Part shown: piece after piece, positions 491-63,109 of the stretch
How the letters are laid out: each line of letters opens with the position of its first letter
Numbering within the stretch: position 1 is the first letter of the stretch
Assembly (NCBI GenBank): GCA_021613535.1
Contig: CP075493.1
Coordinates: 16,244,001-16,308,000, forward strand
DNA: 64,000 nt
Direction of reading: 5' to 3'
Origin: Adineta vaga
Taxonomy: Eukaryota > Animalia > Rotifera
Position numbers and translations under genes: made by a program
Notes under the pieces: generated by a model
What the model was told of the DNA's origin: nothing
Database searches by the model: none
The model's input: the letters and a program-made list of their open reading frames with translations, nothing else

Positions 491-542
491 CTTGAGGGTG
501 TGGGTGTGGGTTAAGAGTATAGTCTGACTCACACCCACACCC
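491..542. repeat. Inverted telomere-repeat cassette, copy 1 (core TTAAGAGTATAGTCTGACTC)
   Basis: CTTGAGGGTGTGGGTGTGGG-TTAAGAGTATAGTCTGACTC-ACACCCACACCC; the reverse-complement core recurs at ~32055 and ~45255. Confidence 0.9.
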
Positions 543-20700: not shown

Positions 20701-23700
20701 CAATTCAGTTAATAATCTACAATGTCCATGCAGTCACATATCAATTAAATACAATAAATTTATATCTTTTCAACCAAGGTATCATCAAATATGTTCAAGT
20801 ATATTTGTATCTGAATTGTGGCTCGATAATATATATTGGGCAGGTACTGTTTCCACAGTTTATACTGATTTCAGATATCTATCAAGTTCGTTTTTTAAAT
20901 TTTTATCAATATTATGTGAAGCAGCTGGTGAAACTGTAGTTAACAGCTTAATTATCTTCAATGCTAATGATTATTTAACATCAGAAGTTGTTTCACCTGA
21001 TATCTTTAGTAACGAAGTAACTTCATTCATTGAATTATTCATAACTACAACACAAAGATTATTTCAACTTCGCATAAATTTAATTCGATCGCTTATATCT
21101 GGAAATCAACTGATTAATCTGAGAAGTACAAACAGTATGCTCCAACGTTTTGATGGTAATTATGGTGTAGAATATCATGCAGTTATACGTACACTTAGTT
21201 TATGCTCGTGTGCTACTAATCTGTTATGCAAACAACCAATGCGTTTTACTTCTTCTGTTGAGCAATATTATATATTGGGAATATTTCAAGCTTGTTTTGT
21301 TGTCGATACAGTATTATTCTCAACAACAGAATGTTTTTTTAGCGACGATTGCATTAATAGATTGAAGTCTGCTATGATTCCAACAGCGATCATATATAAA
21401 TATTTAAAAACATTGAATACGTCCACATCAAGTCAATATCAAGCAAATACAACAATCGAAATAATTGCTAATAATTTATTTGTTGATGATTGGAATGTAA
21501 TCTCTTCTTACAGTCACTATTATGAGCAATGTCAACCATCTTATTGTTCATATACTATAGAAGAAAAACCAAGTCAAATATATGTATTAACAAAATTATT
21601 TTCTATATATGGAGGTTTAATGGTTCTTATGAAGATGTCTGTATCAATTCTTATTAATTTTATTAGACGAAAACCAGTACAGACAATAGGTAACATTTCT
21701 GTTTTCATTTTCATTTTATTATAGAGATATAAATGTTAGAAGATAGTGGATTATGAGTCAACTAGCTCGAGTTTTACTATTAGAATAGAGATAATAGGCT
21801 ACATGAATGCAGTAAACATTTTGATTGATCCATGAATTTCTCGATCGATCGAGTGTTGGTTATGTGCTTTTTCGATATGCTTGCGTAATACTGTTTCTAT
21901 TTTAATATCAAGATTCAACATGAGAACTGAATAGAACACAATTGTTATCGCTTTCGATTTGTACAAAATCAGGCTCTACAGCTTTACTTGTTTACTACGT
22001 ATAATACATTTTTATAGACTCTTTAAATCAACGAAATAATCTCTAAACATTTTAAAATATGTTAGATCATTGAGTAACCAATCTACAAAAATGATGTGTA
22101 GTTTTTGTATCATAAGAGATAAATCTCTTAATCATCATGAGACACAGCCAGGATCGATCTATCTTTTCGAGTCTCTTTTATGCATAGATGTTCATGATGA
22201 CGCGGTAGGATGTTTTTCGGATCAACCAAAAACTCATGAATTTGAAGAGAATTTTAATGTTTGTAAGTGTAATACCATGAAACTCCATGGATCTCCTCGA
22301 TTACTAGTGGTTCTAAACAATCTCAGTATAAAACTCACAACATTTTCTAGCAATCATCGCAGTAGCGAAAGCGATCAGTTTTCTGCCGCGATAGACATCT
22401 CTGGTTGTATGTTTTATGTCAACATAGAGAAAACTTCTATCAAGTTTAGTCATGTTACAATATAAACTATATTAGGATTCGTACTCTGCCACATGGTATC
22501 TTCACAGACATAAGATATCATAATGATGAGTATTTTTGAATTGAAAAAAACTGAAATCATAATTCACACGAAATGATTAATAGATTGATATTCTTCTTGA
22601 TAAGTATTAAAGTATCACTAATGTCCATTATAATGATACGTTTTCTTCCATAATTACATTATACATAACTTGTCGGTACATATAAGAATCTTTTCTTCTG
22701 AGAATAAAAATCAAAACTTAATTGAAAGAGTAAAACTTATATCTCCAAAATCAAAACTATCTAAAGTCATAAAAACCCAAACACGATACTATAGAAAATC
22801 CTAATTCTACAACTTTTAGGTGAAATTTGACATTGTAATATAGATTAGTCATGTTTGATAGACCGATGGTAATACCCATCACCAAAAATGACCATCTGTT
22901 CTACTTTCTGTAAGCTACTTAAGATATGAACAATGAAGAGTTTATACAATATACTACAACGTAGATATTTATAATAACTTCGTAGTCAAATAAGAAGATG
23001 ATATGAACTATCGTTCAGCATAGATTTTCACTTTTAATTATATACTAATTATTTTTAGCAATACCATTGAGTAATCGAATTAAGCAAATTTTTCCATTAG
23101 CCAAAAAAAATTTATTAGATTTAAATTTATTTCAAACTTCTTCGACAAATAATCAAATTATTAAAGAACAAATTTATTCAAGTCGATTTTATATAATTAG
23201 TTTAATAATTATTTTTCCTATTCTTCTATCATATGTGCTATTAAATAAAAAAACAGTAACTATTACGATAGAATTACATAGTTTAAATCAATATAATAGT
23301 TTACGAATGAAATATCCAACAACAATTACCTGTCCTTGCACGGATATTTCTATACGTTATGATCGATTTATAGAAGTTAATCCATTTTATCATCAAATAT
23401 GTTCATCTGATTTTGTCAATCAACAATGGTTTGACTATTTATATGATGAAACCAAAATTTACGAGAAAAGTTATCATAGTACGGCTTCGGCCCAATTTCA
23501 AATTCTTTCATCATTATGTAAACAAGCACAAGTGGCTGTAAATAATAGTCTTATACAATTTTATTCAACAAAATTAATTAGTGGTCAATTAATACCTTCG
23601 GATTTATTACAAATTCAAGTTAATACAACCGTTAATTCCTTTAAAAAAGCAATGCCACAAACATTTAAACAAGCATTGAATATGATCAGCAGTCTTATTC

Positions 23701-24332
23701 ATGGTAATACATTTATAACATCATATGAATCAAACTGGAAATTCACTGTATTAGGTACTTATTCAGGTGCACCTATTTATACAAATCCTCAATCGTATGG
23801 CAACTCATGTAGTTGTGCCACTTCATTAAAATGCTCACAAGAAGTAATACTTACTGGTAATTTAAATTCAACATTATCTGGTTTGTTTATTGGTTGTTAT
23901 CCACTTGAATCATTATTGCAATCATCATTAGAATGTTTATATAATCAACAATGTTTGAATTTAATAATAGATTCTTTTCAAAATCAAATATCCAATGGTG
24001 ATGATTTTAAAATACTTAACTTATCTTCATTATTAAAAAGTTCCTATCAGAGAAATGAAACGGTTGAACAAATAGTCGATCGATTATTTGTTGACGAATG
24101 GAATAGCAGTCATTCTTACCAAAATTATTATGAACAATGCCATCCGTCGCAATGTACTTACTCATACATTCAAAATTCTGATCTACTTTATATAATAACA
24201 ACAATTGTGGGTTTATATGGTGGGATAACGATTATATTAAAAATTCTCTCAAAAATGATAATTCATTTTGTTTTCTCGGTGAAAAACCGTGAACAGACAG
24301 TGATTGTACCAATTTCACCATCAACTAATTAA
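17739..24332 (+). CDS. Membrane protein of three tandem [TM1 - Cys-rich ectodomain - TM2] modules, ~1279 aa, 6 TM; candidate concatenated DEG/ENaC/P2X-topology channel
   Basis: Three exons (17739-19068, 20454-21689, 23059-24332) joined by phase-1 GT-AG introns, one module per exon. Shared motifs: R(L/V/F).. TM1, C.C..ISI.Y..F....P.YH.ICSS.FV...W, F..L..LC, C.C...C, (G/A)C......L.S..EC....C, LFV..W.....Y..QC.P..C.Y, then TM2 with (L/I)YGG(L/I). The channel function is inferred. Confidence 0.85.
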
Positions 24333-28214: not shown

Positions 28215-31200
28215 ATGAACCTTATTGTAAAACTTGGTTTATTCTTTACGGTGTTCATCGTTGTTTTAGTCGCTGTTCTTGTTCCTGTTATTCTTCATTT
28301 TCGACAAAAAAATGATGAGGCTGTATTACCACGTAAGATCTTCGTCATTATTTATGACTATTCATGTTTGTTCGTTCGTAAGAGGAAACAAGAACACAAG
28401 GAAACACTTCAACCGTTAAAACAACTGAAAAGGCTAAGTGTAGAATGTTTGTAAAAAAATAAAAGAGCACTGCTCTTGACATACAGATATTTATACATTT
28501 GTTTGGATGTGAGTGGATGTAGTTTTTATCTTGTGTTCATACGATCAGAATATTTGACATAAAACCTTCGCTTTCATTGGTTGAAATTTCTAAACATTTC
28601 TATGCATTTTTTTAGCTATGACGACCAATACAGGGGTAACATTCAGGTAAGTTTGTGTTGAAATTTATTTTGCCATTACAAATTTCAAGAATTCACAATA
28701 ATGACGTAACAGATTTTGTGTTTTCTCAATTATGGATGCGTTTAATATTTTTTTAAGTTGTCCAATAAATCTGAGATAAGTGTATTGCAACCGACGTGCA
28801 CGCAGTACAAATAGTACACACTAATCGAATTGAAGCTTTTACTACAAATCAGAATGAATATATTTTGAGAAGTTTAATCAAAATTATTTTGTTATTCATA
28901 TTTTAAATAGCTCCTGGAAGAAGTGTGAAGTTAGAGATGTATATGTACCAAGAGTCGGGTCTAGAAATACTTGCACCCTCCTAATTAACACAATAGATGG
29001 GTTTTACATTTCTATCTATGAAAGACTTCACCGGTAAGTTCCTATTTTCGTTCTCCAATTCTGCAACATTGTATAACCTTTTATGATTTGTATTATTCCA
29101 CAAATATCTTTTCTATATCAATTTTTATTTCGTGTTGAACTGGACAAACTGAATATGTTAGTGAGGATAACTGAGTGTTTGATTCATCTCTCACCTACGT
29201 CTGCCTACTTCATATAATGGGGAGTTTGATTTTTCAGCAAATTAATTTGTAGAAAATTAATCTTTTAACAAAAAAAGTCGCTCTACCACTTTACTGATCT
29301 ACGCCTATGAATAAATTCAACGTGGCTTTATATTTGTAAACATTGACCAGGAATTCGTATGCTTCTGAAACTATTTAGTTCTATACCATGACTCCTCAAG
29401 ACGGCTTTTCAAGTGAATAATTCAGTAAGTAACTTAGATGGTTACTGATCATGAGATTACTGTACTCTCTGAACTTTTTACAGCCACTTCATTTTTATTA
29501 TAATTTGCCGCAAAATCAAATTCCCCATGAATTCACCTATAGAGGCGGCGTCAGGACTTTCATTTAGAGGGGACTAAGCCCCCGCCAATCCCCCTTGGCG
29601 CCGCCACTATTCACTGACTCTAATTACTACCGAAATAGCTCTCAATAATTTCCTTACTATTTTTTTCTCAACGCCACACATATTAACTAGAATGTAGTAG
29701 AAAAGGATCCCACGAATAAAACGTGCTCATTTATTTTGTTATTGTGAGAGATTTTATTTTCATTTTCCGCTGGTCTGCAAACTGTAACAAAAAATAACTT
29801 ACATCAGTTGTATGAGCTTGCATTTTTTCGATTGCCACTGTATATGCATAAATTAACTATCATCTTTGGTATTTAAATCGTTCTACTTCTGGCTGTACTA
29901 GCACATCCTGACTATTTTTAAAATATGTTATAAAAACAGCAAGAAATTAGAGATTTGTTGACAGGACATGGACCAAAAACTACTTAGTTGACGTTTGCTT
30001 TTTATTATTCTAATTTATTTACACAGCTCCTCAACTACTTCAAGAACTACAACAAACAATACTATTTCAAGTGGCACAACTGCAACTATAAATCCTTGTG
30101 AGTGAAAAACAACTTTTTATTGACTGTAACAATGCGTCCTTGGTATTAAAAAGTTTGAATTGTCTATGTGAAACGCTAAGATTTACAACATGCACTATAG
30201 AGATATAGAGAGATATCACATTCGACAGAGTAGAACTATTTTTTGTAGCATTCTACATCGATCATTAGTTCTATGAGACAAAGAAAAATATTAAAATACT
30301 GAATAGAACAGCACTATGAATAAAAGATTTGTACGGTAGCTGATTCAGATCTTAGAAAAAAAGAATTTCCGATACAGCCTATCTAGATAATGAATAACGT
30401 ATTATCTTCTTCTTATTTGTATCATTATTAGGTGTATCTGGTAACTTACGTTGGAACACAACAGGAATCACTGTGCTCGATTCATCACAAATATCATCTG
30501 TCAAAGGTATATATATTGACGGCAATAATGCTTTGTATGTTACAGATGCCGATGTCGTATGGAAATTATTGAATAATGCCACAAATGCGACGATTGTAGC
30601 TGGAATCCGTGGATCAGTTGGATGGGACAGTACTCAACTGAATTTTCCTCAAGACGTTTATATTGATAAATATGGTAACATGTATGTGGTCGATACTTTG
30701 AATTATCGCGTACAAAAGTTTGTCAACGGCTCAACCACTGGAATCACTATCGCTGGTATAACTGGATCACAAGGATCTGCAGCAAATCAATTTGCTGTTC
30801 CATTATATTTTACTTTTGATTCAACAGATACATACTTCTATATCATTGATCTTAGCAATAATAATGTTATGCAATATTTGACAAACTCAACCACAGGTGA
30901 CGATGGAACCCGCGTAGCTGGTGGATATGGAGCAGATAATACGAAGACATCATTAAGTGGAGGTAATGGTATTCATTATTTACCGTTGATAAATCCTGAC
31001 TTATTTATAACAACTAATCGCGGACATACAGTGATGCGTTGGACACCTGGGGCTTCTTCGGGTGTTTTTGTTGCTGGTGTGCCTGGTGTAGCAGGTTCCA
31101 ATTCTACACTTTTAAATCAACCGAGAGGTATCCGGATCGATAAATATTTGAACATGTTTGTTGTCGATTTTAGCAACCATAGAGTACAAATGTTTTGTGC

Positions 31201-31357
31201 GAACAATCCAACTGGTATAACGATTGCTGGCACTGGTATTGCAGGCAATAGTGCAATGCAATTAAATACGCCAAGAGTCATAGCATTCGATACATACATG
31301 AATATGTACATTGGTGATGCTGGTAATAACCGTGTTCAAAAATTCCTCAAATACTAA
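28215..31357 (+). CDS. Type II membrane NHL-repeat (beta-propeller) protein with a Thr-rich stalk
   Basis: Phase-consistent exons 28215-28332 (TM), 28616-28646, 30027-30097 (SSTTSRTTT) and 30432-31357. NHL repeats include QLNFPQDVYIDKYGNMYVVDTLNYRVQKF and QLNTPRVIAFDTYMNMYIGDAGNNRVQKF. Confidence 0.9.
29540..29609. mobile_element. 70-bp hAT-like MITE (intronic)
   Basis: TAGAGGCGGCG...CGCCGCCACTA termini; flanks TTCACCTA / TTCACTGA look like a decayed 8-bp TSD. Confidence 0.55.
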
Positions 31358-46323: not shown

Positions 46324-47042
46324 TATATAAATATATTCATTTTATCTTATGAAACTATTTTAGATATTTATGACTTTTTCAATTGTCTCGAAAAGAACAA
46401 ACTCAAGCTTAAGTTATTAATTATCATCCTACTCCAAGAATAAAATCAGTTTTAAAATTCGATGATGATTCAGAAATAGAATGCAACTAGAGAAAAGATA
46501 GTCCGTTCTTCGGTTATAGGTAAAGATATAAAGTAAATGATTAACATGTAAAGAGCCTTTATCCAAATTCGATGAACTTGAAAGAAATTCTCAGTGCAAA
46601 ATATGTTTAATAATTATAAATAGAATACAAAGAAATAAAAACAACCATCAGAATCCAAGGAACTGAGTAAATTTAATCAATTCAAAGGTTCATTCTATTT
46701 CTCACATCTCTCTACATGTTCCGGATGAAAAAGTTTTAGAAAATGATTATTCGAAAACATTGTATATATTCTTTCGAAGCATACAAATTATAGATCTGAT
46801 TACTCTTAAGTATATTATGAACAATTCAATAAAATTCTTCAATAAATACATCGTATTCCGTTTGACTAGATGAATTTATTTCAATAATACGATATTAAAT
46901 GGTTTATGTAGAAAGAACTAATAAAGCAATCGAGTAAAATATTCATTATAGAAATATATAGTACAACAACAACAACAACAACAACAAATAAAATAAAAGC
47001 AAAAAACAAATACAAAATGATCTGATAGATGTCAATTGATTA

Positions 47043-50000
47043 TTATTCGATAATATTCAAAAATATCTCATAAAATCCACTGGATTCATTAACATCGATG
47101 ATATCTTCACGCCCATCAGTATTAAAATCTCCGATAGCAATCCAACCATTTCCATTAGTAATTCTTGTTAAAAATGCTATCTGTAATTGAAAATTTCCAT
47201 TCCCATCTCCAATTAATATGTTTACTTGATGAGACGTTCGACCAAAACCGATATCAAGAAAGCCATCGTTATTGAAATCTTTGACAAATAATTTATAGTT
47301 TGATATATCTCCTATATCATATTTCTTATTTTTACCTAAAGTTCCATTACCATAACCAAACATAACGATAATATAATTTCTTTCTTCATAAGAAATAACA
47401 ACATCTGATAGTTTGTCATTATTAAAGTCACCTATAGCAAAACTCTCTGGAGTATGAAGGCCTCCACTGATAGAAGTCTTTTGTTCTTGAAATGTTCCAT
47501 TACCGTATCCCAGAAAGATACCAATATTTTTATCATACTGATTTAAAACAGCAATATCTGGATAATTATCATTATTAAAATCAGTAACGGCAATGCTTAA
47601 TGGATAACTATTTATACCAGTACTATATCTCTCATATTTTGAAAATTTTCCGTCACACGATCCAGAAAATATATTAACGAAATTATTCCTATCACAAAAA
47701 GCAGTAGCAGTTGTCCAAACGATATCTAAGCATGGATCACCATTTAAATCAACTGAAATGACTTCTGTGGTTCCGGAGGATGTGGGTTGGTAAAAACTAT
47801 GTTGAAAACGGCCAAAACCATCTCCGAGTTTTACCGTCAATCCACCAAATTCACGAAAACCAATTAGATCGACTCGATTATCATTGTTAAAATCACCAGC
47901 AATAATTTGTATCAAATCATTATAAAAACCATAGGACATAAATTCTGTTCTAAATGTTCCATTACCATTTCCAAAGTACAAAGACACAATGTCTTTGCCT
48001 TCATTGAGAAAGGCGAGATCCATTCGATTATCACCATTAAAATCAGCAACAACGCGTTCTTTTTTCATATACAAAGGAATTTTCACACTATTTACTGGTT
48101 GAAATTTTAACTGATTTGGTGATTCTTAGAAATGAACAGAAACAAAAAATAATATACTTATTTCTTAAATCAAACTTATTTTGAAGAGATCTGTATCAAT
48201 ACGATATTGGGGTATTAGTATTGGTATTGTTACATCCCTATCCTTAATTTCAGGGACGTATAGTAAGGGGGATCCGTGGAGCGTACTGCCCCTCTGTTTT
48301 GGGAAAATTTTGGCGGTGCCCCCTGCTTAATTTAAAATTGATTAAAAATGAGTAAGGTAGTCGAAGAGTACCGATGATTATGTCAGAATATGTCCAGATA
48401 CTTTCAAAACTAGAAAATTTTTTCGAAAAAAATTAAATACTTTGTATTTTTGTTCATTGAAAAGATGATTGTTAAAAATAGGAATCATTTCTCATGACTT
48501 ACTGTATTGAGTTGTCGTTGTCGTTAATATATTTGTTACTAAAGTTGTATTGAAGCTAGTTGCCATAATTATCGTTGAAGTTGCTAAAGAATTTCAAGAC
48601 ATATATTGAAAGTGATTAAAAATATGAGATTCATATTTCTTTAGATGAATAGTATTTTTTTGAAAGAATTTATATTATTCGACATACTAGTTTATGTATT
48701 TTTAGTTTTCATTGTGATCCAAACCGTCAGTTAGTCGCGAGTCTTTTTCTACATAGTTTTTTCATTTCTAACTGAAGACATAATTTTTAAATCTTAAAAA
48801 TCTATCAGATTTTATAGTCATAATCACACCTCGTGAAATTTTTTTATAAGCGTGTGTTGAAGTCATTGGTACTACTCAGTTTTGTTTAGTTTTCGCGTTT
48901 GAATTTAACTTCGAGATCTTCATAAATCATATTTTAATATATTAGAAAAAGGTCTTTTGATGAAAATTAGCGTTCTGATGATTTTTTCTGAAGAAATGAT
49001 AAAAAATTCGATAAAAAAATGTTCGTCAAACGAAAAGCCGATTGTCAAGAAGCAATGATGATCGAAAACTATGATAGAAAGTCAAAGATATACATGTAGA
49101 TTCTTATTATATAATCGTTTAGTCTTTGTAAATTAAAAGATGAAAAACTAAATAAAAGAAAATCGATAAAATGACGATCCTACTTGTTATTGTTGTCTTG
49201 TTTTTTTGTCGAATAATATAAATAGAAAATATAATTAGATTTGTTATTATTAATAACAATGTTAAACATAAGAAAATTTTCTTAAAAGAACATCGATTCA
49301 ATGTTGTGCTACAGAAGAAACAAAATATATTTTTCATAGCAATGAAATTAAATCAGACGTACTACAATGGCACATTATCATTTGATGTTAATTCTGTATT
49401 TGAAAGAGAAGATAAAATATTTGTATTAGTAGGTATTGTTTCAACTAAACGTATAGGATGAATTGTATTTCTTTTATTCTTTTGATATCGATATATTTTG
49501 AATATATTTTGAATAATTTTCGGACTAATCCATCGAAGAACAATTGATAGACCGGATTGAATACTAAGTAAAATAGTTATTATATAAATTAAATTAAATT
49601 TTTCAATATAAGTATAAGAACATGATAAAGGAGAACATTGTTCATAATAAGATGTATAATTCATTGTTGTATTCCATTGTTCAATAAATAAATTATTAAT
49701 AAATTCATCAATAGTTGTATCAACTGAATATCGACTACTATTTAGTTTTACAAGTGCATCAAGAGAATTTGTTGTTGAATTGGTTTGATTGATTGTATTC
49801 ATATATTGTTGAATAGTATTAATACATGATTGATTATAAAAACATTCAAGTGTTGATAAACGAAAGGATTCACTTGGTAAACATCCTATTTTTAAACCTT
49901 CAATTAAAATAGTTTCCTTTGATGACTTGTTTTTATTAAACATAGCTTGACTTGTACAATTAGAATATAATCCACATGAACAAGTATTATTATTATAAAT

Positions 50001-53000
50001 CACAGGTTCACTAGGTATATAATAACCAGCATGTAGAATCATATATTGAAAATTACTTCCATAAGTTGATATAATAGCATTTCCATGATTGATATTTCGA
50101 ATTAATAAAAGAAGACGCGTAAATGTTGTTGGAGCAGTTGATTGTTTTTGTTGAATTGTTAAATTAAGACGTTTATGAAAATTTGTTTCGGATAAAAGTT
50201 CAGAAGTTGTAAATAATGAAAAACGAAATTGTTGAACAGTAATATTTACTATTTGACTAGAAAGTTGACATAATCCTTGAAGAAATTGTAAATGAGCAGA
50301 AAGGAAACGACGATAATCTTTCTCAGGTAATAAATTAGTTGGAATAGAACCACCTGTCAGTTTACTTCGTCCTTCATTCGAAGTGAATGGACTTGAACAA
50401 ATCTAAAATCAATAAAAAATGAAGCTATATAACTTTAAAGATTTGTTTTTGAATATTTCCAAAAAAGTTAATTTACTGATCCACACTCTTATTCATAGAC
50501 TTTATAAAGTTGTGCATTTATTTTATTATTTTTCCTTACTTGATGAAATTTTGCTTCCGTTTTGACAAATCTTTCGTATGGTGATGCAACTGATGAACAG
50601 ATACATTTTAATTCGTCTCCATATTTTTGATAAAGTTCATTATGTTTATCAAAACCTGGTTTCTCAAATGTTTTTGTGTGTCTTGTAGATTGAACACCAT
50701 TATAAATAGCGAGAATAATGAGACCAATGATAAACAAAATAAGATATAGACGAGTAGCCCATATTCCGAGATGTTTAATTGTTGTTCGATCAATATTATT
50801 ACCAAAATCACGTACATTGAAAATATTCAATTCTTTCAAAATTTTGTATAAAAGTGTGATCAGTTTCTGAACAGTTGCTTTGATTCGAATAAAGCATGAT
50901 AAATGAACTATTTATAATAAAAGAAATTTTATATTTTTTTTAAATACCAATAAACCAATTGTTATGACTCTCATTATATTAGAAAACAACTCGAAGAACA
51001 GCATCTTTTTTGAAACATGGGTAGTGAAATCTAGGAATAAAAGACTGATTTTTCTTTCTCTATAGAGATAGCAAATAAGTGTGCAATGTGTGATTTTTCG
51101 GGTCAAATAAAGTGAGCTGAGGGTGGGTGTGGGTGTGAGTGAAGAAGATGTACCTACACCCACCCACACCCACACCCACACCCACACCCACACCCACACC
51201 CTCACCCTCAAGATGGTACTAAAGAACAAAAGATATTCGTAACTACTCTAATTAAATTCTTAAAACCAAAAACTCTATTGACGATTATTTGTAAATACTG
51301 ATCTTTTTCATCCGTACAACCTTATCAATAGTGAATCATTTTTATTTTATATCAAGAGGGACTTGTTATACTATATAAATAGAACCAAGAATTACTTTGC
51401 TGTTGTTGTTGTTGTTGTTGTTCTTTTTTATTAATCTTTATGGATAAAAAGAAAACAAACTTGACTAGTTGAGGCACAACAAGCCGCAATACGATAATCA
51501 ATCCACCGATCATTGATATAAATTTGATTAAGACTTCACTGAATTTTGGACGAATTTTAATTAAGTAAGTACAACGAGTTGGTGAACATGATTTATAAAA
51601 CAGATCATATGAAAAAGATGAATTCCATTGTTCAATAAAAACATTTTTGATAATTGTTAAGATTGTTGTATTTGGAGGAAAACGACTTATTTCACCCATG
51701 TAAACATTTTTTGAGTTAAAACGCGTTTCAACTGCGTAGCGAACGCGTCTAATTTGAAGCAATTGAGCGCGTTTATGCGCGTCCCTGGTGAAACAATCGA
51801 GGCCCCTAGATGCAACCCAATAACAATTGCGTTTACACGCATCTGCTACAAAACTGCGTCCAGACGCGAACCAAATGAAAGTGCGTTTAGACGCCTCGAT
51901 TGTTTCACCACAGACGCAGCTGTAATCTGTGACGCTGCTAGACGCAGTTACGACATGAACTGTGATAAAAAATAAAACCGCGTCTAGACGCCCCGATCGT
52001 TTCACCAGGGACGCAGCTGTGACCTGAAACGCTACTAGACGCAGTTAAAACTTGAACTGCGCCTAAACGCGAATTCGAAACAGATTGCGTCTAGGTTCAA
52101 CCGAGATGACAGACGCAATCGAATGCAGTTTGTAATAAAAGTGCGTCTAGATGCGTTTGATCAGGTTTTTCAAAATTTGAAAAAATATATCATAATCCGT
52201 CTCAGTTTTGATCTGAGTCGCCATCGATGACCCCTAGCGATGGTCTTTACCTTATTATAGGCCAACGGAATGATGATATATTGATTTATCTAGAATGATA
52301 TGAGAGAGATTTGAACAAGTGAACAAGCGATTTAGAAGCAAGTGTACATACCGTTCAGTCACATGTGACTGCAATCGTTATCATATAGAAGAGAAAGTCT
52401 ATGTGAAATTTGAATCCATTTCTATGTGATTACATCAATTATTCGGATAGTTCTACCGTGAATAATATTTAAGCTATTATTATTCATATTTAAAAAATAA
52501 AAATAAAATAAACTATATTTTTTTTAATTAAAATTTTTTCATTTATCGAAATTATTCTACAGAATGGATATTTTTAGACTTAAATTACATCATTTATTTT
52601 CTAAAATCATTATTTTAACGTTTTTGTATCAAATATTCTTTGTTTTTCATTTTTTTATCCAGTAATATAAGCAATAAAAATTCCTTTTTAATTATTATAC
52701 AAAAACAAAACCAATTGAATTGAAGCATGTATCTGAAAAATTAGCACTAAAAATTCCAGTTATGATCAAAACAAAATTAAATATTTTGATCGAATTAAGA
52801 TCTATCGATCAATATTCGATTTGACCGTTTTCAAAATATGTTTTTGTTATATTGACGACGAGAATATTTTATTTCGTGTATTATTTTGTTATCTAAATTT
52901 AAAATATAAAAAATATTTTCAATTAATATTTCCATCATTACAAACTAATTTATATCTTTTGAATTTCAGCACATAATCTATTTTTATGATTTATAAAGAA

Positions 53001-56000
53001 ATAAAATCTCTTTGATTCATACTTCTATTATATTTACAAAGAAAAAATATTTCTTGAAAATTTATGGAAGTTCAGATTTTTATTGAATTTTATTCAAAGT
53101 ACTTTCCATCAAAAATATATTTATTCATTTAATATATGTTTAAGATTTTTTTCTTTGTTACGAATTTCGATCCAAAGTTTTTGGGATTCGAAAAATATTC
53201 AGATAAGATTTAAAATGTAAAAAATTCGTTAAAAGAGAGGAAATTTCTATTTATTCATATTTTTTAAAAATAAAACAACTGTTTTGATAAATAAGAACTT
53301 CACGGCAAAGCAACGCCACCTATAAAAAATTGTAGCATTTACTTGAAAAAAGAGCATGATCGCTTTATTTGAAGATTCTTTCATAATATTTATCAAAATC
53401 AAAACTAAAAACATGAATTCGTTTAGCAAAATAATCTTCCAATAAAATTATTGGTTTTTTGTTTTTATCTCAAACAGGATACAAACGTTTGTTATTTCAG
53501 AAAACCATTTAGATTTAAATGCATTTTAAAGGAAATCTTCTTTTAATTTAGATATTTTTATCAATAAAAAGCAAATTCTTATAACTTGAGGTGATTTTCA
53601 AAGAATTTATTTCAAGATCTATTATTAAAAAATGTCCATTAATTACTTTTGTTTATTTATAGATGGAACGGCAGCATTCTCGACGAAATTCTACTTCAAG
53701 TGTTCATTCACAATCAAATTCGGCAAATATTCAATGTTCAGAACAACATACCCATGCTGTTGTTCGACGAGAAAAAGATGACAAAGTTATTCTTGTTCCA
53801 TTGAATAATTTTATCAATTTTGGTAAAACTGTAAAAGTCAATGAGATTGCTACGTACAAAGGAAGTGCCGATTCTCGAAAATCGGATCGAGGAAAGGTCT
53901 TAATTTTTGGTTAGTTTTTGAACATGAAATATTTTTATCAATAATGGTTTTGTTCTCTTTTTTCTTCAGGTACTGAAGATCTTTGTGTCGAACAGCTGCA
54001 AGTTTTACAAGAAGAAATTATCGAAGAACCATCACCAGAAAAACAAATAAGTAAACATCTCAGTTTTGCATATTTTCTCTCTTAAGTTCTTATTTTAAAA
54101 GCAAATGAAATCTTTTATTGTTTACTTGATAATTATGATAAAAAACAATTTCTATTCATCATATATAGAACATACGAATTCATCGATGGCAAATTCGAAT
54201 AATATTCATCACGAAGAACATATTATCAATACGAAAAAGAAACCGAGCAAGTTTTTATATCTATAACTCATAGTAAATTTCAATTCATATTTCTTTATTT
54301 TTTTAGATGATAAATTCCACGAAGAAGATAAAGAAAATCATGCAGTAAATCACTCAACAGGATCCAAGCGTTCATCAAAATTGAATGGTAAGTTTTCGTA
54401 TTTATAATGAATAAATAAAAAATATTGATATAAAGTTTGACTTAAGGATTGTTTGCAGGAATATCCCAAGAAAAAAGATTTCTATAATTCTTTTATGTAG
54501 CATAGTTATTTTTAAACTAAATTTAATAAAGAAAGTCTTTAACATTCAATAGATGTTTCATATGATTAATAAAAAAATTAATATCAGAAATAAATGTAAA
54601 TATATATTCCATGATTTCAAAAATCAATTGTTTTCTATCAACTTAGTTCGGTTTTAAATTTACCATTAATTTTGTTTCTATTTATAGAAATTGATGATGA
54701 TCGATCAAGAACGTTACCAACAAAAAAGATCAATTCAACTAATATTCTCGCTAGTAATAAATCTTCAACATGCCAGGTGAAAAAGCCAGTGCAAGTGAAA
54801 CGAAAATTATTCCATAATAGTGATGAAGATAATGATATTGAAGAATTATCAACAAATAAAAATACCTTTGATGAAGGTGAGCAAATAACGATTGTTCTTC
54901 AATAGGTTTCGTTCGTTAACCATATATAAGCAAGAATAGGATGCAACTTATGAACCTTTTTTATTTTAGTTAGTATGTAGAAATATGTGAAAAAGGGAGG
55001 AGAAATATTTGATAACTTTCTATACTTCTCTTTAATAAAAAATAATACACATGTCTGTTAATTATTGTATCATTTTAGAAGATGAAGATTCTGGTATTCC
55101 AATTTCTTCCACAAAACAAAAATCAAAAAAGGTTCCTTCTCATGATTCACCAGTTATAGAAGAAACACGAACTAATAATCTTCAAAATTCTCGTAAGAGT
55201 TTAACACCAAAAGTTTTCTCAAATGAAACACAATCCAAACAAGTTGATAAATCAGTCAATCGTGATAGTAGTATGTATATTACTTTTTTTATATATTATC
55301 GTGGTATTTACATTTATTTTTATAGATACAGATGATACTAGTTCTTCTGATGAAGATAATGATGAAGAAAATATTTCTGACTTTGTTTCTAAAACGAAAT
55401 ACAACAAATTACAAAGAAAATTACAAAAAGAAAAGAACAAAGTTTTGGTACTTGAAAAACGAATTTCATACTATAAGAAAAACTACATGCGTATGTATCT
55501 AATAAATTATGTTTTGTACGATAAAGAAAAGCCGTTTTTGATCTTTTACTTTTTGAAATTCTATTCTTTGAAGAAAACTAATGCAAAAGATAATTAAATA
55601 ATTATCGTTCTCACTCTCATATAGATCATCTTAGTATTGTTCTTGATACGCATATAATTTCTTTCATAATATTTTCTTTGAGAAGAAATTTATTTTAATA
55701 TTTATCTGTTTTAGCTTTACCTGATGGTGGTGCTCGTGCATATTTCTTAAAAGTGGCCAAGCTTCTTAGTTCAACATTAAATGCAGCTGATGTATATGAA
55801 CATGCTAAACGTATAAACAACATTAATCCCAATACACTTCTTGGGTGTATTCGAGATACTGGTACACATACTACCCGAAATATTATAAATAAATTATTTA
55901 CACCTGATGAATTGATTAGTAAAGCTGGACCAGAAGCTGTTTCAAAATTATTGCGAAAGAACATTCGTAGTAAGTCTTATATATATATATATATATATTG

Positions 56001-59000
56001 GCACAGACAATTTCTACTAGAAAAAAAAAGAATTGAATGTGATCTATTCGAATAGTTCATGTTTATTGGAGTCATACAATAAAGGAAATATATGCATCTT
56101 GCGAATAGCCATATTATTTGTTCGTAATCAATATTATAGTAGTAAAAATTCAATAATTTAAATACGAATGTTTATTATTAATGATTCATATTATGTATCT
56201 ATAAGAATTTGTTTGTATCAGCATATTTCTTTTAATTTAGATTTTGTTGAAGCTCATCATGGTCCATTTAGTAATGATCGTCCATTTAATGAAGCAATCA
56301 ATGGTGTGTTTCGTCAGGCAAAAGAAGATAAAGATGGCAATGAAGGTTCAATTAAACCAATTTCAAAGAAACGAAAAAGTACTGGTAAACAATTAACAAT
56401 TGATAATATGATTTCATCCAAGAAATCAAAATCAAATAATACGAATAAAACAACAACGATGACAAATAGTACACAGTCACTTAGTGATGATGATTGAAGT
56501 TGAAGATATCTTCTTTAAAAAAATTTTCTTAACTGTTCTTTCTTTTTTTTTACGTTGTTGTTTCTTAGGACATATAATAATCAATTATATATACATATTC
56601 ATGAAGAAAAAAGGATATAGATAGGTTATTTTTTATATTACTCTAGATGAGTTCTCGATCAACCAAATGGCGTAATCGACAACGCATCGAAAGTCTTTTC
56701 AATGAAGAACCACCGATATTGAATTTATCGTCAGATTCAATCGATAATGAGTATACTAATCGACTAATTTGATATTTTTCTCTTGAATATGACATTCTAT
56801 TTTTCTTTTAGGTTAAGTCAATCTTTTTGTCAAGATACCAGTTCATCAAAACAAGAACTCTTGAACGACAATCAAAATATCAATCATGATATTAACAAAC
56901 AGTCTTCTTCTCCCTCTTCTTCAATGAATCTTCAAGATTTTCTTGAATCACTTGGAATTAATACAGATGATGATAATTCTGGTACCATTCAAATTGATCC
57001 AGATGTTGAAGATGAAGAAGAAATGCAAAAACATGAATTTCTTGATCTGTAAGTGTTTATTATTGGTATTTATAGTATGGATAATCTTTTAAATAATTTA
57101 ATTTGATACTTTATCTTGATAAAATACAGCTTACTTGATAATCATACAGATCTTTTTTTCAAACATATTTATAAAATTTCACATGTGTTTATTTATTAGT
57201 TTTTTCTATAATCTTTTCTTTTTTTTCGAAAGATCTGCTGAACCATCGATTCATGAAGTTGCTGCTGTTCTTAATGTGCTGAAAGCCAGACATAATTTAT
57301 CAAACCGTTGTTTGGATCATATTTGTCAACTGATGCAATCATTAAAAGCTCAAAACGTGCCTAAAAGTTCATCTCATATCAAACGTATTCTTTTACCAAC
57401 ATTAACAATTGATAATACACGACCTTTATATTTTTGTTCTAAATGCAATAAATTATCAAGTAATGAAAAAAATTGTACCAATGTCAAATGTGATGACAAT
57501 AAAGAATTTACTACAAGACCACCTGTTTTTGTTCGTATGCCTTTAAAATCTCAAATACAAGATGTACTGTCACGATTTTCGTCACATTATTTTCAACAGC
57601 AATCTAGTTCCAATTTACCTAATTCGTCAAATATTACTGAAGGTTCATTTTACAAGAAAATTGTTGAACAAGAAGGTGAAAATTTTATTTCATTGGTGAT
57701 GAATGTTGATGGAATTGAAATTTCGAAAAGTTCGAAATCTTCTTTATGGGTTATTACCTTCATTATTAATGAATTAAAGAAATCAGATAGATTTCAAATG
57801 CAAAATGTTCTTGTTGGTGGTATTGGAGCAGGTTTATCAAAGCCATCGCGCGAAGAAATGGCTGCCTATTTACAACCGATCATTAATGAATTGCTATCAT
57901 TAGAAAATGAACGTCGGTATCGAATGAACGATGGAAATTATTTATCTCTTAAAGTATTTTTAATTGCTGGTTCTTTGGACAAGCCTGCACAGGCACTTGT
58001 ACAAAATCTTACTGAAGTAAATGGAGCATATGGTTGTGGTAAATGTTTAATTAAAGGTATGATTAATTGCAGTTGCATAGATATTTATTTAATATTATTA
58101 TTAACAAATATAATTAGAAGTATTTGTTTTTCTTTTCTTTTCGTTTCTAACAGGTATTACAGTACCAATAAAACCGGAGTCTATTAACAAAATTCGTGTA
58201 TTTCCTATTCGAAAACAAGATGTTCAACCAAAACTTAGGAATAATTTTACTTATGATATTAAAATGGCTATACCAGAAAGATTTCGTCCCACAGAAAAAA
58301 CAGCTCGTCGTGATTACATGTGTGGTTATATGGGTGAATGTTGTCTACGAGATTTACGGTTTTTCGATGTTGGTCGTTGTTTTGTATTTGATACTCTTCA
58401 TAATCTTTATAGAGGCTCATTTGTAAGTATCTATCAGAAACATCTACTACCAACATATGTTAAAATCATATGTCTATATATCTTTATTCTTTTTTATATT
58501 ACTAGTTAGTAAACTTTCATATGATCTCGTATATTTAGAGCAGAATACTTGATTTATGGCTTGATTCGGAATATCGACGTGAACCATGGTCGTTACGATC
58601 AAAAATTAACCTCGTTGATGTTTCTTTATCTATACATAAATTTCCATCAACTACGTGTCGGATACCAAGAACAATTCTTAAGTACAAACAATTTAAAGCA
58701 AATGAATTAAGATGTCTTATTCTATTCGGATTTTCAACATTTTGTATGTATTTACCGAAGAAATATAGTCGACATTTTTTAATACTTGTTTTAATTGCAC
58801 ATATTTGTGAATCCAAGATAATTACCGCGGAACAATTGTTACACTTGAAAATGTTGACAAATGAATTTATTTATCAATTTCCATTGCTTTATGGTGATCG
58901 ACAAAATGTTATGTCAATACATACGATTATGCATTTAGCTGAATCAGTTAGAGATTTTGGTGGTGTATACAACTATTCCACTTTCAATTTTGAAAGTTAT

Positions 59001-62000
59001 CTAGGTGAGTGAAATGAATTATAAAATATATAAAACATCAAAGGAAAAATTTCGATAATTGTAATCAACGTCAGTTACTTATCTGAGAGAAAAAAATCGA
59101 TCATAAAGAAATAGCGCTAAATATTATTGTCTGATTACATTAATCATATAATGATACTACTTACCTATTCGATACATATATTTATAGAAATGAAGCTTTT
59201 TAAAAGAAGTGCTCATATTGGCATATACATTCTCATCGTATGTATTTTTAATACAAGATAGTCAAACTGAAAATTTGTTTTATTCTTTTGTTGAATCCAA
59301 CTAATTAAATACTTACATCTCATATCTGCATATACTTTTACATGGTTTCTTTTTCCGTGAAGCTTTATAATAAGTTTCTCTGTTTATCTATTCTCCTATG
59401 TGAATATGATTCAATGAATAATCGCGTTGAGACGCATTTGCATTACTTGTATTGATCGCATACAAACGCGCTTTGATTTATCATCGCGTCTAAGTGCGTT
59501 TAAAACTGTGAATAACAGCGTCTAAACGCAGTTTTATAAGAAGTCTCATTCATACGCATTTGATCTGTTTTTCCGAGACGCGGTGGTGTACGATTTTGAT
59601 AACAATCGCGCTCGGGTGCGTTCGAGAATTTGATAAATATGCGTCTTGATGCGGTTGTATATATGATCGCGTATAGACGCATTCCAAAAACTTATATAAG
59701 CAGCGTATAAACGCGAGTTTATCGGGCCGCGCGTCCAAGTGCGTTTAAAGATTTCGGATCTACGCATATAGACGCAGTTTAAAAACCAGCCGCACGTAGA
59801 CGCATCGTAAACGGTTTCACAAATTGCGTCCAAACACCGTCTTGTCTATAAGCGCGTCGAGATGCGTTTGAAAGCCTTTTCAACTGCGTCTAGGCACCAT
59901 GAAATACAAAATCGCGGATATACGCGAAGAATATTATTTTGATCTTTGCGTCTAAACGCGCTTGTAAATAAATACGCGTTTACGCGCGGCAAAATCGAGT
60001 TTTAGCTGCGTTTAAATGCGTTTCCAAAATCCAAACGCAGCTGAATGCGTCTATGGTGCGTCTCCTGTTTACATGGGCAGAATTATAAACAAGAGGATGA
60101 ACATGAAACCATGATGAATATTCAACATTATAAAGATATGTTTGTTTACTATAATTCATTATTATTGATAAACAATTTGTATCTGAATAGTAACATTCAA
60201 GTGTTGAAAGTAGTAGTGATTCAGTAGCTGTACACCCTGCATATGATCCTGGCACTGTATAATGTTGGATGTATTTTGGTTCATCTGTCCAACCACAATC
60301 AACATCATATATATGAAGTGGAATTCGACAGTGAATATCAAAACCACAAATACATGTTAATGATTTATTGTTAGCATCACGAGGTCCAGTTAACATAAAA
60401 TGTAACTAAAAATAAAACTCAATACCAATTAATAATAAAATTACTTTTGAAACATTGATTAGAGTCTATTATATGTATTTAAAAATAAATCTGTTTCATA
60501 TCATTACTTCTAGTCGAGAGTATTCTCGAGATGGATTTTCTTCTTCAAATCGTTTACCATAACCACTAAATGGTCCCGAATATGGTAAATCAGTTCGCAT
60601 AAGAAGTCGTTCTGTGTCAGTAAGAAGAGTAAACGAATCATTTGTTGATTGAAAAAAAGCATCAAGTGTTGCATTGATTTGTAAATTAAAATCAATTTTA
60701 GATAAAATATTTGAAACAATAAATAATTTCGAAAGAAAATGATTCGAAGATTCTTCAACTATTTTTTGAGCCAATTTACAAAAATAAGATAATAAAGAAA
60801 ATTTTGCAAAAGCTCGATTACGCCAATCTGGAATACGATGTCCAGTTTTAATATATTTTAATAATGTAATCCATTCATCTTTAATAAAATCACTCGAACA
60901 TACTTGATGAAATATTGGAGATAATCTAATAAAACTTTGATAAGGTATTACCATACTTGAACATGAACATTGAAGTGTATTTGAATGTTTTATATATAAT
61001 TTATCATATGTATCTAATAATGGATTTAATTCTTCTATTGTAACAAATTCAGTATTAATTGATGTAAAAAGAACAAGAATAAGACATGAATCTTAAATAA
61101 ATAAACAAGAAATCGACTAGTTTTATCTCTAAATAAATCTATTTTCTAATATATTTAATAATGGAAATAGATATTTACTTGTCAATAGAATTAAATAGAC
61201 AATTGTAATAATCTTTTGTTTTTTTATATCATTTTCTGTTCGTTTTGTCAAATTCTTAAATAAATTTAATTGTTTTATATATTGAACAAATTTATATAAA
61301 TAAATCATTTGAAAAACTAAAAAAATCAAAAACTATAAATATTAAATTTTGTTTAATGAAATTAAATAAATACTATGAAAAATATTTGAATTTCTTCGAT
61401 GATATTTCATTTTCCAATAAATATTAATTAAAAATAAAACAATTAAACGCAATATAATTGTAAGACCGCCATAAAGACCCATAAATAGAATAATAACATA
61501 AGAAAAATGAAATGATTGAGATATTTTATATGTACAAATTAAAGGAAAACATTCATTAAAATATTTTGAATAATTTATTTCTGTGATTAACCATTCATCA
61601 ATAAAAAGATTAGATAAATGATCTATTACAGAAATATTTTCTTTTTTTGAATTTAAATCGAGTGGTTTTAAAAATGTCTAAATAGAATAAAAGAAAGAAG
61701 ATTTTCTTATATGATATAAATATTTTATACATACTCGATTAATATTTGGAAATTTTATTGATAATAATTCCAGACATTTCATATCGTATAAACAATCAAG
61801 TGTACTTTGAAGAATAGCTTCAAGAGGAGTACATGCTGTATAAAATCCATTAACTAATGATTCATTTGAAGATGGTTTTGTCCATTTTTGACGAATTTTA
61901 TATTGTGAATCATTAAAAATAGAAAGAAAACCAACTAAACTTGTTGGGTTTGAGTTACTACAACCCAAAATTACTTCAGTTGTAGAACCATCAAATTTTT

Positions 62001-63109
62001 TTTCTGTATATGATATTTCATTACTATGGAATTTCGTGTCACCAACAATATATTTATCAAGCATAAATAAAAGATTTGTATTAAGAGCAGAAATTAAGAC
62101 ATTTGCTTGAATTGTAGTTCGAAGATAATTTAGAAATAGAGTTATTTGAGAAGATGCATTATTTTTAAAGAATTCAACAGTTGCATTTACTTTTTGTTGA
62201 ACTTGTGTTTCAAGAAGAAGATCATTGTAGATAAATTCATCATGATATAAATCTTCTAATCTTTGAGAGATAACATCTTGAGATATTAAACAAAAAGTGG
62301 ATAAAAGTTGAAACTAAATCAATGATAAAAGTTGATTTAAATTTAAAGATTTATTTCAACTAAATTTACTTGAGAACTAGCTGTTGATCGAAAATCACCT
62401 GTTCCATATTTACTTGCATCTTCGAAATATAATTCTTCAATCCATTGTTGACTAATGAAATGACTTGAACAAACAGGATGATAGTTGATCGTACTGGAAA
62501 CAAAATTTTTCAAAGGTATTGATATTGTTGAACATGGGCACGAGAGAGTGTCACTATATTTATGATAAAGTTCAGCGAAACTATCGACAGATATTTTGTC
62601 AGTATGAATTATTCGAGAATTTGATGTCATCAGAGTAGCCAAGGAAAGAATATAAAGAGATCCTAGAAAGTAATACATAAATTTATTATGACATAAAAAT
62701 GTTATTTTAGTAGTTTTCTAAAAAAAACTCTGTATCAGAGATGAATGAGTCGCGGTGTAACAGCGCCCCATCTGTACCTCTTTTATTATCCCATCGATCT
62801 TTGATTTATATAATTTTCAAGATATTTTTTACTATTGATCAAAATTTTTGATATAATTTGCCTCTTTCAATATTTATGTATAATGACTTATTAATAAATT
62901 TATATTTTAAATATGATCAACGATATTCTTTGTGACTTACCAATGAGAAGTAGTACATATAACCAAGTTGCATATTTTTGTTGCTTGAGAATAATTGCTG
63001 GATCATTTTGTTCATCATTGTCATCATTATATTCATTTTCTTCACGCATAAAAATATTGTAATTACATATTTTTTCATAAAATCTATGAGCCAGTTTTTT
63101 AAGATTCAT
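47043..63109 (-). CDS. Three [TM - Cys-rich ectodomain - TM] modules plus a seventh TM, Thr-rich stalk and FG-GAP/VCBS repeat propeller; interrupted by a transposon in module 2
   Basis: Exons ~63109-62941, 62662-62370, 62313-61735, 61677-61373 (module 1, FMGLYGGL); ~61316-61179, ~61091-60508, 60405-60080 plus 51694-51396 (module 2, ISMIGGL); 50907-50540, 50403-49363 (module 3); ~49308-49185 (TM); ~48584-48503 (stalk); ~48125-47043 (DFNGDNRMDL, DFNNDNYPDI, DFNNDGFLDI repeats). Frames are open apart from the insertion. Confidence 0.8.
48251..48325. mobile_element. 75-bp hAT-type MITE (intronic)
   Basis: CAGGG...CCCTG termini flanked by a perfect 8-bp TSD, CTTAATTT. Confidence 0.85.
51116..51212. 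repeat. Inverted telomere-repeat cassette with an alternative core (intronic)
   Basis: GCTGAGGGTGGGTGTGGGTGTGAGT-GAAGAAGATGTACCT-ACACCCACC(CACACC)n-CTCACCCTCAAG; same CCCTCAAG end as copies 1 and 3. Confidence 0.85.
53663..56497 (+). CDS. Transposon accessory protein (multi-exon) with acidic low-complexity regions, a coiled coil and a BEN-like domain
   Basis: GT-AG exons lie inside ORFs 53663, 54672, 55051, 55223, 55753 and 56168. Coiled coil KYNKLQRKLQKEKNKVLVLEKRI. BEN-like segment TRNIINKLFTPDEL...RKNIR.FVEAHH......FNEAINGVFRQ. Confidence 0.65.
56647..59012 (+). CDS. EnSpm/CACTA transposase (Transposase_21/Tnp2-like), spliced
   Basis: Exons ~56647-56750, 56812-57048, 57233-58056, 58153-58422, 58539-59004 splice in frame. 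Motifs: CSKC...CTNVKC, MNVDG, SLW, DKPAQ, NGAYGCGKC, DTLHN, FKANE, HLAESVRDFG, FNFESYLG. Confidence 0.9.

Follow-up and report, generated by a model that had tools for sequence, protein, structure and literature searches.

The window analysed here is a stretch of 64,000 nucleotides from chromosome piece C1 of Adineta vaga (A. vaga), a bdelloid rotifer, and its DNA is eukaryotic and AT-rich. A minus-strand gene, read from position 63109 to position 47043 of this window, has in order three tandem modules (modules 1, 2 and 3), a short hydrophobic exon, a Thr/Ser-rich exon and an exon of FG-GAP repeats. It belongs to a family whose A. vaga proteins carry I4U23_ locus tags. We conclude that this gene is very probably a transposon-interrupted copy of a large, bdelloid-only family, the intact form of which is a seven-pass protein with a tethered propeller. 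Each of the three modules would have an ectodomain of ~320 residues, Cys-rich and N-glycosylated, with one transmembrane (TM) helix before it and another after it. Behind the modules, a linker rich in Lys and Arg would lie in the cytosol, and then a seventh helix, TM7, would return the chain to the outside, where a flexible Thr/Ser-rich stalk, probably O-glycosylated, would bear a C-terminal seven-bladed FG-GAP propeller. In the window copy, the join of module 3 to TM7 would need the removal of a 54-nt phase-2 intron that overlaps an apparent stop codon, and a cut-and-paste transposon of 8.4 kb would have entered the module 2 exon in recent times.

The three modules lie in tandem on one strand, and each has two TM helices and a conserved Cys pattern. 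The coding sequence is interrupted by the 8,383-bp transposon in the module 2 exon; outside this insertion, no exon contains a stop or a frameshift. The parts of the gene are the following.

62900-63109, minus strand: putative first coding exon (N-terminus), an open reading frame (ORF) whose ATWLYVLLLIG stretch resembles the WATRLY motif ahead of the TM helix in the modules; placed by this resemblance rather than by homologue alignment.
61345-62714, minus strand: module 1 (TM1, Cys-rich ectodomain, TM2; short introns), located by tblastn with P0004, P0056 and P0033; 14 paralog loci have these pieces in the same order.
60080-61089, minus strand: N-terminal part of module 2 (TM3 and ectodomain), ending at the transposon; tblastn, 45% identity to P0056 residues 7-318.
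51695-60077, plus strand: 8,383-bp DNA transposon inside the module 2 exon, recognised by its terminal inverted repeats (TIRs), a TG duplication and transposase ORFs on the plus strand.
51424-51692, minus strand: C-terminal part of module 2 (FIEQWN...CSP..C.Y motif and TM4); tblastn, 52-58% identity to P0004 and P0056; it adjoins the N-terminal part in paralog L031.
50537-50890, minus strand: first exon of module 3 (cytosolic linker, TM5, start of the ectodomain), found by tblastn; part of P0113 (I4U23_005331), in which the TM helix is residues 136-154.
49363-50402, minus strand: main exon of module 3 (Cys-rich ectodomain, TM6, Lys/Arg-rich cytosolic linker), 56-57% identical to P0004 and P0056, with zero stops.
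49309-49362, minus strand: probable 54-nt phase-2 intron, GTACGT...TTCTGTAG, placed in this copy from paralog introns at the same site.
49184-49308, minus strand: TM7 exon (RCSFKK, a 22-residue hydrophobic helix, RQKNK), with a homologous segment in 14 of 14 paralogs.
48503-48583, minus strand: Thr/Ser-rich stalk exon; P0121 (I4U23_005330) begins at an ATG within it and splices from 48503 to 48124.
47043-48124, minus strand: FG-GAP exon, a predicted seven-bladed β-propeller (Pfam FG-GAP_3; AlphaFold2), ending in the stop TAA at 47045-47043.

The fusion of the modules to the propeller was assessed in the 14 closest paralogs of the FG-GAP exon in the same genome, with 10 kb examined around each. 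Modules 1, 2 and 3 and then the propeller follow each other on the same strand and in that order at all 14 loci, and also at one locus of Adineta steineri (A. steineri). In L033, the segment [7600-9942] is a single ORF of 781 amino acids that runs from module 3 through TM7 and the stalk to the propeller; the sole remaining tail intron at this locus, of 51 nt (GTAAGT..AG), is in frame and stop-free. The frame of module 3 leads straight into TM7, with no stop or intron, in five paralogs (L033, L032, L037, L038 and L039). In L036, module 3 reads into TM7 through an in-frame stretch of 54 nt (18 codons), which is spliced out in the A. vaga model of this locus, P0002 (I4U23_016576), to give a module-TM7-stalk-propeller protein. 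In L031, L034, L035, L042 and L044, the site of the window's intron is taken by a phase-2 intron 44-61 nt long, the donor of which is GTATGT in most cases, and no start codon is conserved ahead of TM7 among the paralogs. Besides P0002, fused public gene models are found in A. steineri (P0004 and P0006), Adineta ricciae (A. ricciae; P0033) and Rotaria (P0011). The many public models of ~850 amino acids that show one module plus the tail come from genes that were split in prediction; for P0006 of A. steineri, the gene call only 329 nt upstream contains modules 1 and 2. In the public annotation of L033 (G000:C6:13466501-13476500), I4U23_031511 (P0001) is marked partial and spans 51% of the 781-residue ORF, which means that intact fused genes are truncated in the annotation too.

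The initial annotation, made from the letters of the window, had suggested surveying the C-terminal domains attached to three-module genes, and the FG-GAP tail was surveyed by comparing coordinates. We compared 63 A. vaga module 3 loci, each matching module 3 of the window with an E value of 1e-41 or better. The window's propeller subtype lies 0.3-3.5 kb downstream, on the same strand, at 46 of them. Conversely, the subtype has 46 loci with a single propeller, and module 3 stands just ahead of it in 45 of them, the exception being C3:18091913. An NHL propeller is an alternative tail in P0101 and P0115; for this tail the search by coordinates was uninformative because the NHL family is too large (126 of 902 candidates scored). 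Continuous paralog ORFs, an intron shared in site and phase, fused models in four species and the 45 of 46 propellers behind a module 3 support the view that module 3, TM7, stalk and propeller form one gene in the family. The initial annotation had also read the tail as a captured type II receptor unit. The survey found no free-standing copy of the window's propeller subtype in A. vaga, and the fusion is common to Adineta and Rotaria, which argues that it would be a single old event followed by expansion, and not a recent or local capture. Free-standing type II FG-GAP proteins do occur in bdelloids (P0216 and P0222), and their repeat arrays are longer and of a different kind. A separate class consists of very long single-ORF FG-GAP proteins of 1399-1814 amino acids with many tandem propeller repeats (for example C3:3045686, C1:787875 and C5:2200644). 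Some paralog tails look damaged, with in-frame stops or a gap of ~230 nt in the propeller exon (L031, 8972-9206; L037, one TGA). These stops and gaps are either extra introns or signs of pseudogenes, and in the latter case a fair share of the family copies would be damaged.

The FG-GAP exon [48124-47046] matches Pfam FG-GAP_3 (PF13517) with an E value of 3.8e-43 and 146.3 bits (cut-off 26.9) in 6 stretches, and Pfam FG-GAP (PF01839) with 3.6e-17 and 62.3 bits (cut-off 22.1). The FG-GAP/VCBS nature of the repeats was thus correctly recognised at the outset, while their number, put at about six, is seven: D[FL]NxDxxxD motifs start at exon residues 27, 77, 125, 181, 232, 282 and 332, with a spacing of ~50 residues. 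The AlphaFold2 model of the exon, computed from an alignment of 41 tails, has a pLDDT of 90.4 and a pTM of 0.90, and its 28 strands make seven blades. A predicted Ca2+-type loop, DxNxDxxxD, is present in all seven blades, and its Asp columns are invariant over the 41 tails. The window copy retains every invariant and nearly invariant column of this alignment. The propeller is preceded by the TM helix, and the chain ends 7 residues past blade 7. Nearly all tails keep a Cys at the start (C-x-L-K-F) and another at the end (L-L-N-x-C) of the propeller, which we read as a putative ring-closing disulfide pair that would be lost as a pair. Both are lost in the window copy and, independently, in L032, and L031, the sister paralog of the window copy, retains both.

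Module 3 has 11 N-glycosylation sequons, all of them between TM5 and TM6. Since the six module helices would leave the chain in the cytosol and TM7 would bring it back out, the stalk and the propeller are predicted to be extracellular. In the AlphaFold model of the Rotaria homologue P0011 (module 3 and the tail, from an alignment of 51 sequences), confidence is good for the module and for the propeller, and the overall pTM is 0.50. TM7 forms the helix [446-482], while the linker [399-449] and the stalk [476-515] are disordered, the latter with a pLDDT of ~30. The disorder and the pTM point to a loose tether with no docking, and the model thus does not bear out the earlier suggestion of a built-in sensor held next to the ectodomains. 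The most likely role, in our analysis, would be that of a diversified surface recognition or adhesion receptor, in which ligand binding by the propeller may depend on Ca2+; the ligand may be a glycan.

The insertion in module 2 ends in perfect 12-bp TIRs (CCCATGTAAACA) with subterminal GCGTCTAGACGC-like repeats, and it is flanked by a TG target duplication at 60079-60078 and 51694-51693. Its ORF 57135-58187, on the plus strand, matches Pfam DUF1258 (E 5e-14, 52.8 bits, cut-off 33.1) and, weakly, Transposase_21 (E 7e-5, 22.6 bits, below the cut-off of 28.6). The element may be a cut-and-paste transposon of the CACTA/Mirage/Chapaev type. At least 8 further copies of its right subterminus, 81-87% identical, are present in the genome and end at the position that corresponds to 51695/51694. 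Two other delimitations were rejected. A CATG duplication would shift the frame, and the other copies place the element end at 51695; a 10-bp TIR lacking a target duplication disagrees with these same copies, which indicate 12-bp TIRs and the TG duplication. DNA similarity to L031 and L032 ceases at 60080, and the two flanks are separated by no more than 6 nt in L032. When the element is removed together with one TG, the open frame is restored and it aligns to the family proteins with no gap. The insertion looks recent, given that the remaining exons are open and that the propeller has lost none of its invariant residues. With the exon broken by the element, a full-length protein is impossible as assembled, and the product would be truncated at best. 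Three copies of the right end of the transposon are located ~14.9 kb apart on C1 (17614703, 17629635 and 17644567). The intron between modules 2 and 3 is ~380 nt longer than in L031 and contains an inverted telomeric-repeat structure at window 51113-51216, in which a core of 19 nt (GAGTGAAGAAGATGTACCT) is preceded by a (GGGTGT)n-type arm and followed by a longer (CACCCA)n-type arm. A 'telomere staple' at window 491-542 has the same build and a different core.

Several observations weigh against an intact, fused receptor gene behind this copy. The two other tail introns, of 600 and 378 nt, are unusually long for this genome, and neither proved to be a repeat. The donor of the TM7 exon, GTAGGA, is weak, and for this reason its splice to the stalk exon is only a probable one. 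Both family Cys residues of the propeller are lost in the window copy, which fits decay as well as it fits a compensated change. Words of the locus are absent from the RNA runs searched, which gave no transcript for this copy; three probable RNA runs yielded only scraps of FG-GAP motif of 20-30 nt, derived from paralogs. The public annotation has two genes here, I4U23_005331 ending at the TAG that closes module 3 and I4U23_005330 beginning in the stalk exon. Finally, the proposed function is read from fold resemblance alone, with TM-scores of 0.54-0.68 and identities of 14-21%.

Of the explanations that these points favour, the one that survives best takes the whole locus for a pseudogene in decay, with a tail of no further importance, and not for a functional gene or insertion allele that was recently hit. 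The transposon within a coding exon, the missing Cys pair, the long introns and weak donor, the lack of RNA contigs over the locus and the in-frame stops in several paralog propellers would all agree with decay. Nevertheless, leaving the insertion aside, the exons carry no stops or frameshifts, the transposon still has perfect TIRs and an intact target duplication, and the conserved propeller columns have been kept. The joint loss of the Cys pair in L032, with its retention in L031, looks like the loss of a disulfide pair and not like random decay. We therefore regard a pseudogene as possible and somewhat unlikely, and prefer a recently interrupted member of the fused family.

The reading that there are two separate genes, as annotated, bears on the join of module 3 to TM7. 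The frame of module 3 closes at a TAG at 49364-49362, which straddles the donor of the 54-nt interval GT(ACGT)...(TTCTGT)AG at 49362-49309. A contig from an independent DNA run, covering 47017-50287, is identical to the locus with the TAG included, and the TAG is thus not an assembly error. Removal of the interval preserves the frame, in phase 2, as the initial annotation had proposed, and the two exons that it had placed after this intron were also found. The exon 49308-49184 has one hydrophobic segment of 19-22 residues with a Kyte-Doolittle value of 2.75, preceded by the family motif RCSFK, and the exon 48583-48503 is indeed rich in Thr and Ser. If there were two genes, the first would end at the TAG, and the second would be either the stalk and FG-GAP part or a type II TM7-stalk-FG-GAP protein starting from the ATG at 49337. 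This ATG lies within the proposed intron and opens an ORF that includes TM7, the public models P0113 and P0121 are split exactly there, spliced RNA was not found in the RNA runs searched, and an independent transcript of the tail is conceivable because the upstream gene is broken. However, the start ATG of P0113, at window 51697-51699, lies inside the terminal inverted repeat of the transposon, and this model is a chimera of a transposon end and a host exon. In P0121, neither a TM helix nor a signal peptide was found in the protein, yet it encodes a glycosylatable propeller with Ca loops. Both models thus seem to have been salvaged from a gene that is broken. Two genes are further opposed by the paralogs, with their single frame into TM7 and no conserved start codon before it, and by the near-constant position of the propeller subtype behind module 3. 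Separate genes are in our judgement improbable. The fusion of modules to propeller thus stands for the family, while in this copy, annotated as two genes, the splice 49363/49308 is well supported by homology but unproven.

That the protein is a single-chain pseudo-trimeric ion channel with ENaC/ASIC/P2X-like topology and the propeller as a built-in Ca2+ or ligand sensor, a thought raised by the 2-TM, Cys-rich topology of each module, by the three modules at all 14 paralog loci and the A. steineri locus and by the Ca2+-type loops in all seven blades, has little probability, as the modules match no Pfam family, their nearest atlas clusters are unnamed and rotifer-only, the structure model predicts no fixed contact of the propeller with the module, and a copy number and divergence like those of the family would be expected of recognition receptors more than of channels. 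In the module searches, neither single module exons (E up to 1) nor whole modules (E up to 0.01) matched any Pfam family, including the ASC and P2X receptor models, and the 'channel-like trimer' of the initial annotation consequently finds no ENaC or P2X signal. In our view, the protein is not an ion channel. As a broader and more tentative proposal, which we hold to be rather unlikely as a whole, the family may represent a class of surface receptors that is undescribed and confined to bdelloids, with three pseudo-symmetric Cys-rich ectodomains and a freely tethered, exchangeable FG-GAP or NHL propeller on one chain, expanded to dozens of divergent copies and serving glycan or non-self recognition (immunity, or the sensing of food or substrate) or, less likely, acting as a ligand-gated single-chain pseudo-trimeric channel.

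The locus itself, as a damaged copy, is of minor importance, and the family is of more interest. At least 46 A. vaga loci share the plan of seven TM helices, three ectodomains, stalk and propeller, which is also found in A. steineri, A. ricciae and Rotaria. The modules have neither a Pfam family nor a relative outside the rotifers. The family is uncharacterised but already publicly catalogued, and public annotations often split its genes at the intron that overlaps the stop codon. FG-GAP and NHL families have been described as expanded in A. vaga (PMC3846280); with such splits, the true architecture is concealed by domain counts that report an expansion in bdelloids. Once the gene set is corrected, a single experiment on expression or binding would make this lineage-specific receptor family accessible. 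In the literature searched, we found no description of the three-module-TM7-stalk-propeller architecture.

Within bdelloids, the closest relatives of the FG-GAP subfamily are the tailless three-module, six-TM proteins (for example window 17739-24332 and P0056), which have the same module family, order and Cys pattern. The tailless proteins end in the cytosol after TM6, whereas the FG-GAP subfamily adds TM7, the stalk and the propeller, and in a further subfamily (P0101 and P0115) TM7 and a stalk are followed by an NHL propeller. The window also contains the NHL gene that had been reported in it as free-standing. Its NHL exon, 30473-31357 on the plus strand, matches Pfam NHL with an E value of 1.2e-11, and a TM-bearing ORF, 28215-28454 on the same strand, lies 2 kb upstream. 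This pair (28215-31357) and the first three-module gene share a strand, the pair being 4-6 kb downstream, and it may be either a free-standing gene or a distant tail of the three-module gene.

Among solved structures, a profile search with the propeller placed lectin-type FG-GAP propellers nearest (E 1e-18 to 6e-9), namely Streptomyces UmbA (9oee, 8w20) together with PVL, PAL and AAL2 of fungi, followed by CRTAC1 and then integrin alpha (8e-8 to ~3e-4). A fold search of the Protein Data Bank with the propeller model agreed, with lectin propellers on top, and added ITFG2. PVL from Psathyrella velutina (2bwm/2bwr/4up4) and UmbA4 (9oee) are likewise seven-bladed FG-GAP propellers (E 1e-18 to 1e-16, TM-scores 0.54-0.63); however, these lectins lack a membrane anchor, being soluble or borne by toxins, and their identity to the rotifer propeller is only ~20%. 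The vertebrate proteins FAM234A/B (ITFG3) and ITFG1/ITFG2 have a single FG-GAP propeller on a membrane or scaffold protein, and ITFG2, of KICSTOR, is among the top fold matches. FAM234A resembles the TM7-propeller unit in being a type II membrane protein. In contrast, the Pfam FAM234 propeller model reaches 13.5 bits on the window exon against a cut-off of 26.4, and none of these proteins has multi-pass Cys-rich modules. The integrin alpha head (alphaV, alpha6) is also seven-bladed, exposed at the cell surface and equipped with Ca2+ loops of the DxDxDGxxD type. Integrins differ in being type I proteins with thigh and calf domains, a beta partner and Ca2+ loops in some blades; the window gene has neither thigh and calf domains nor a type I TM helix after the propeller. 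The rotifer propeller instead is C-terminal, follows a TM helix and carries the loop motif in all seven blades.

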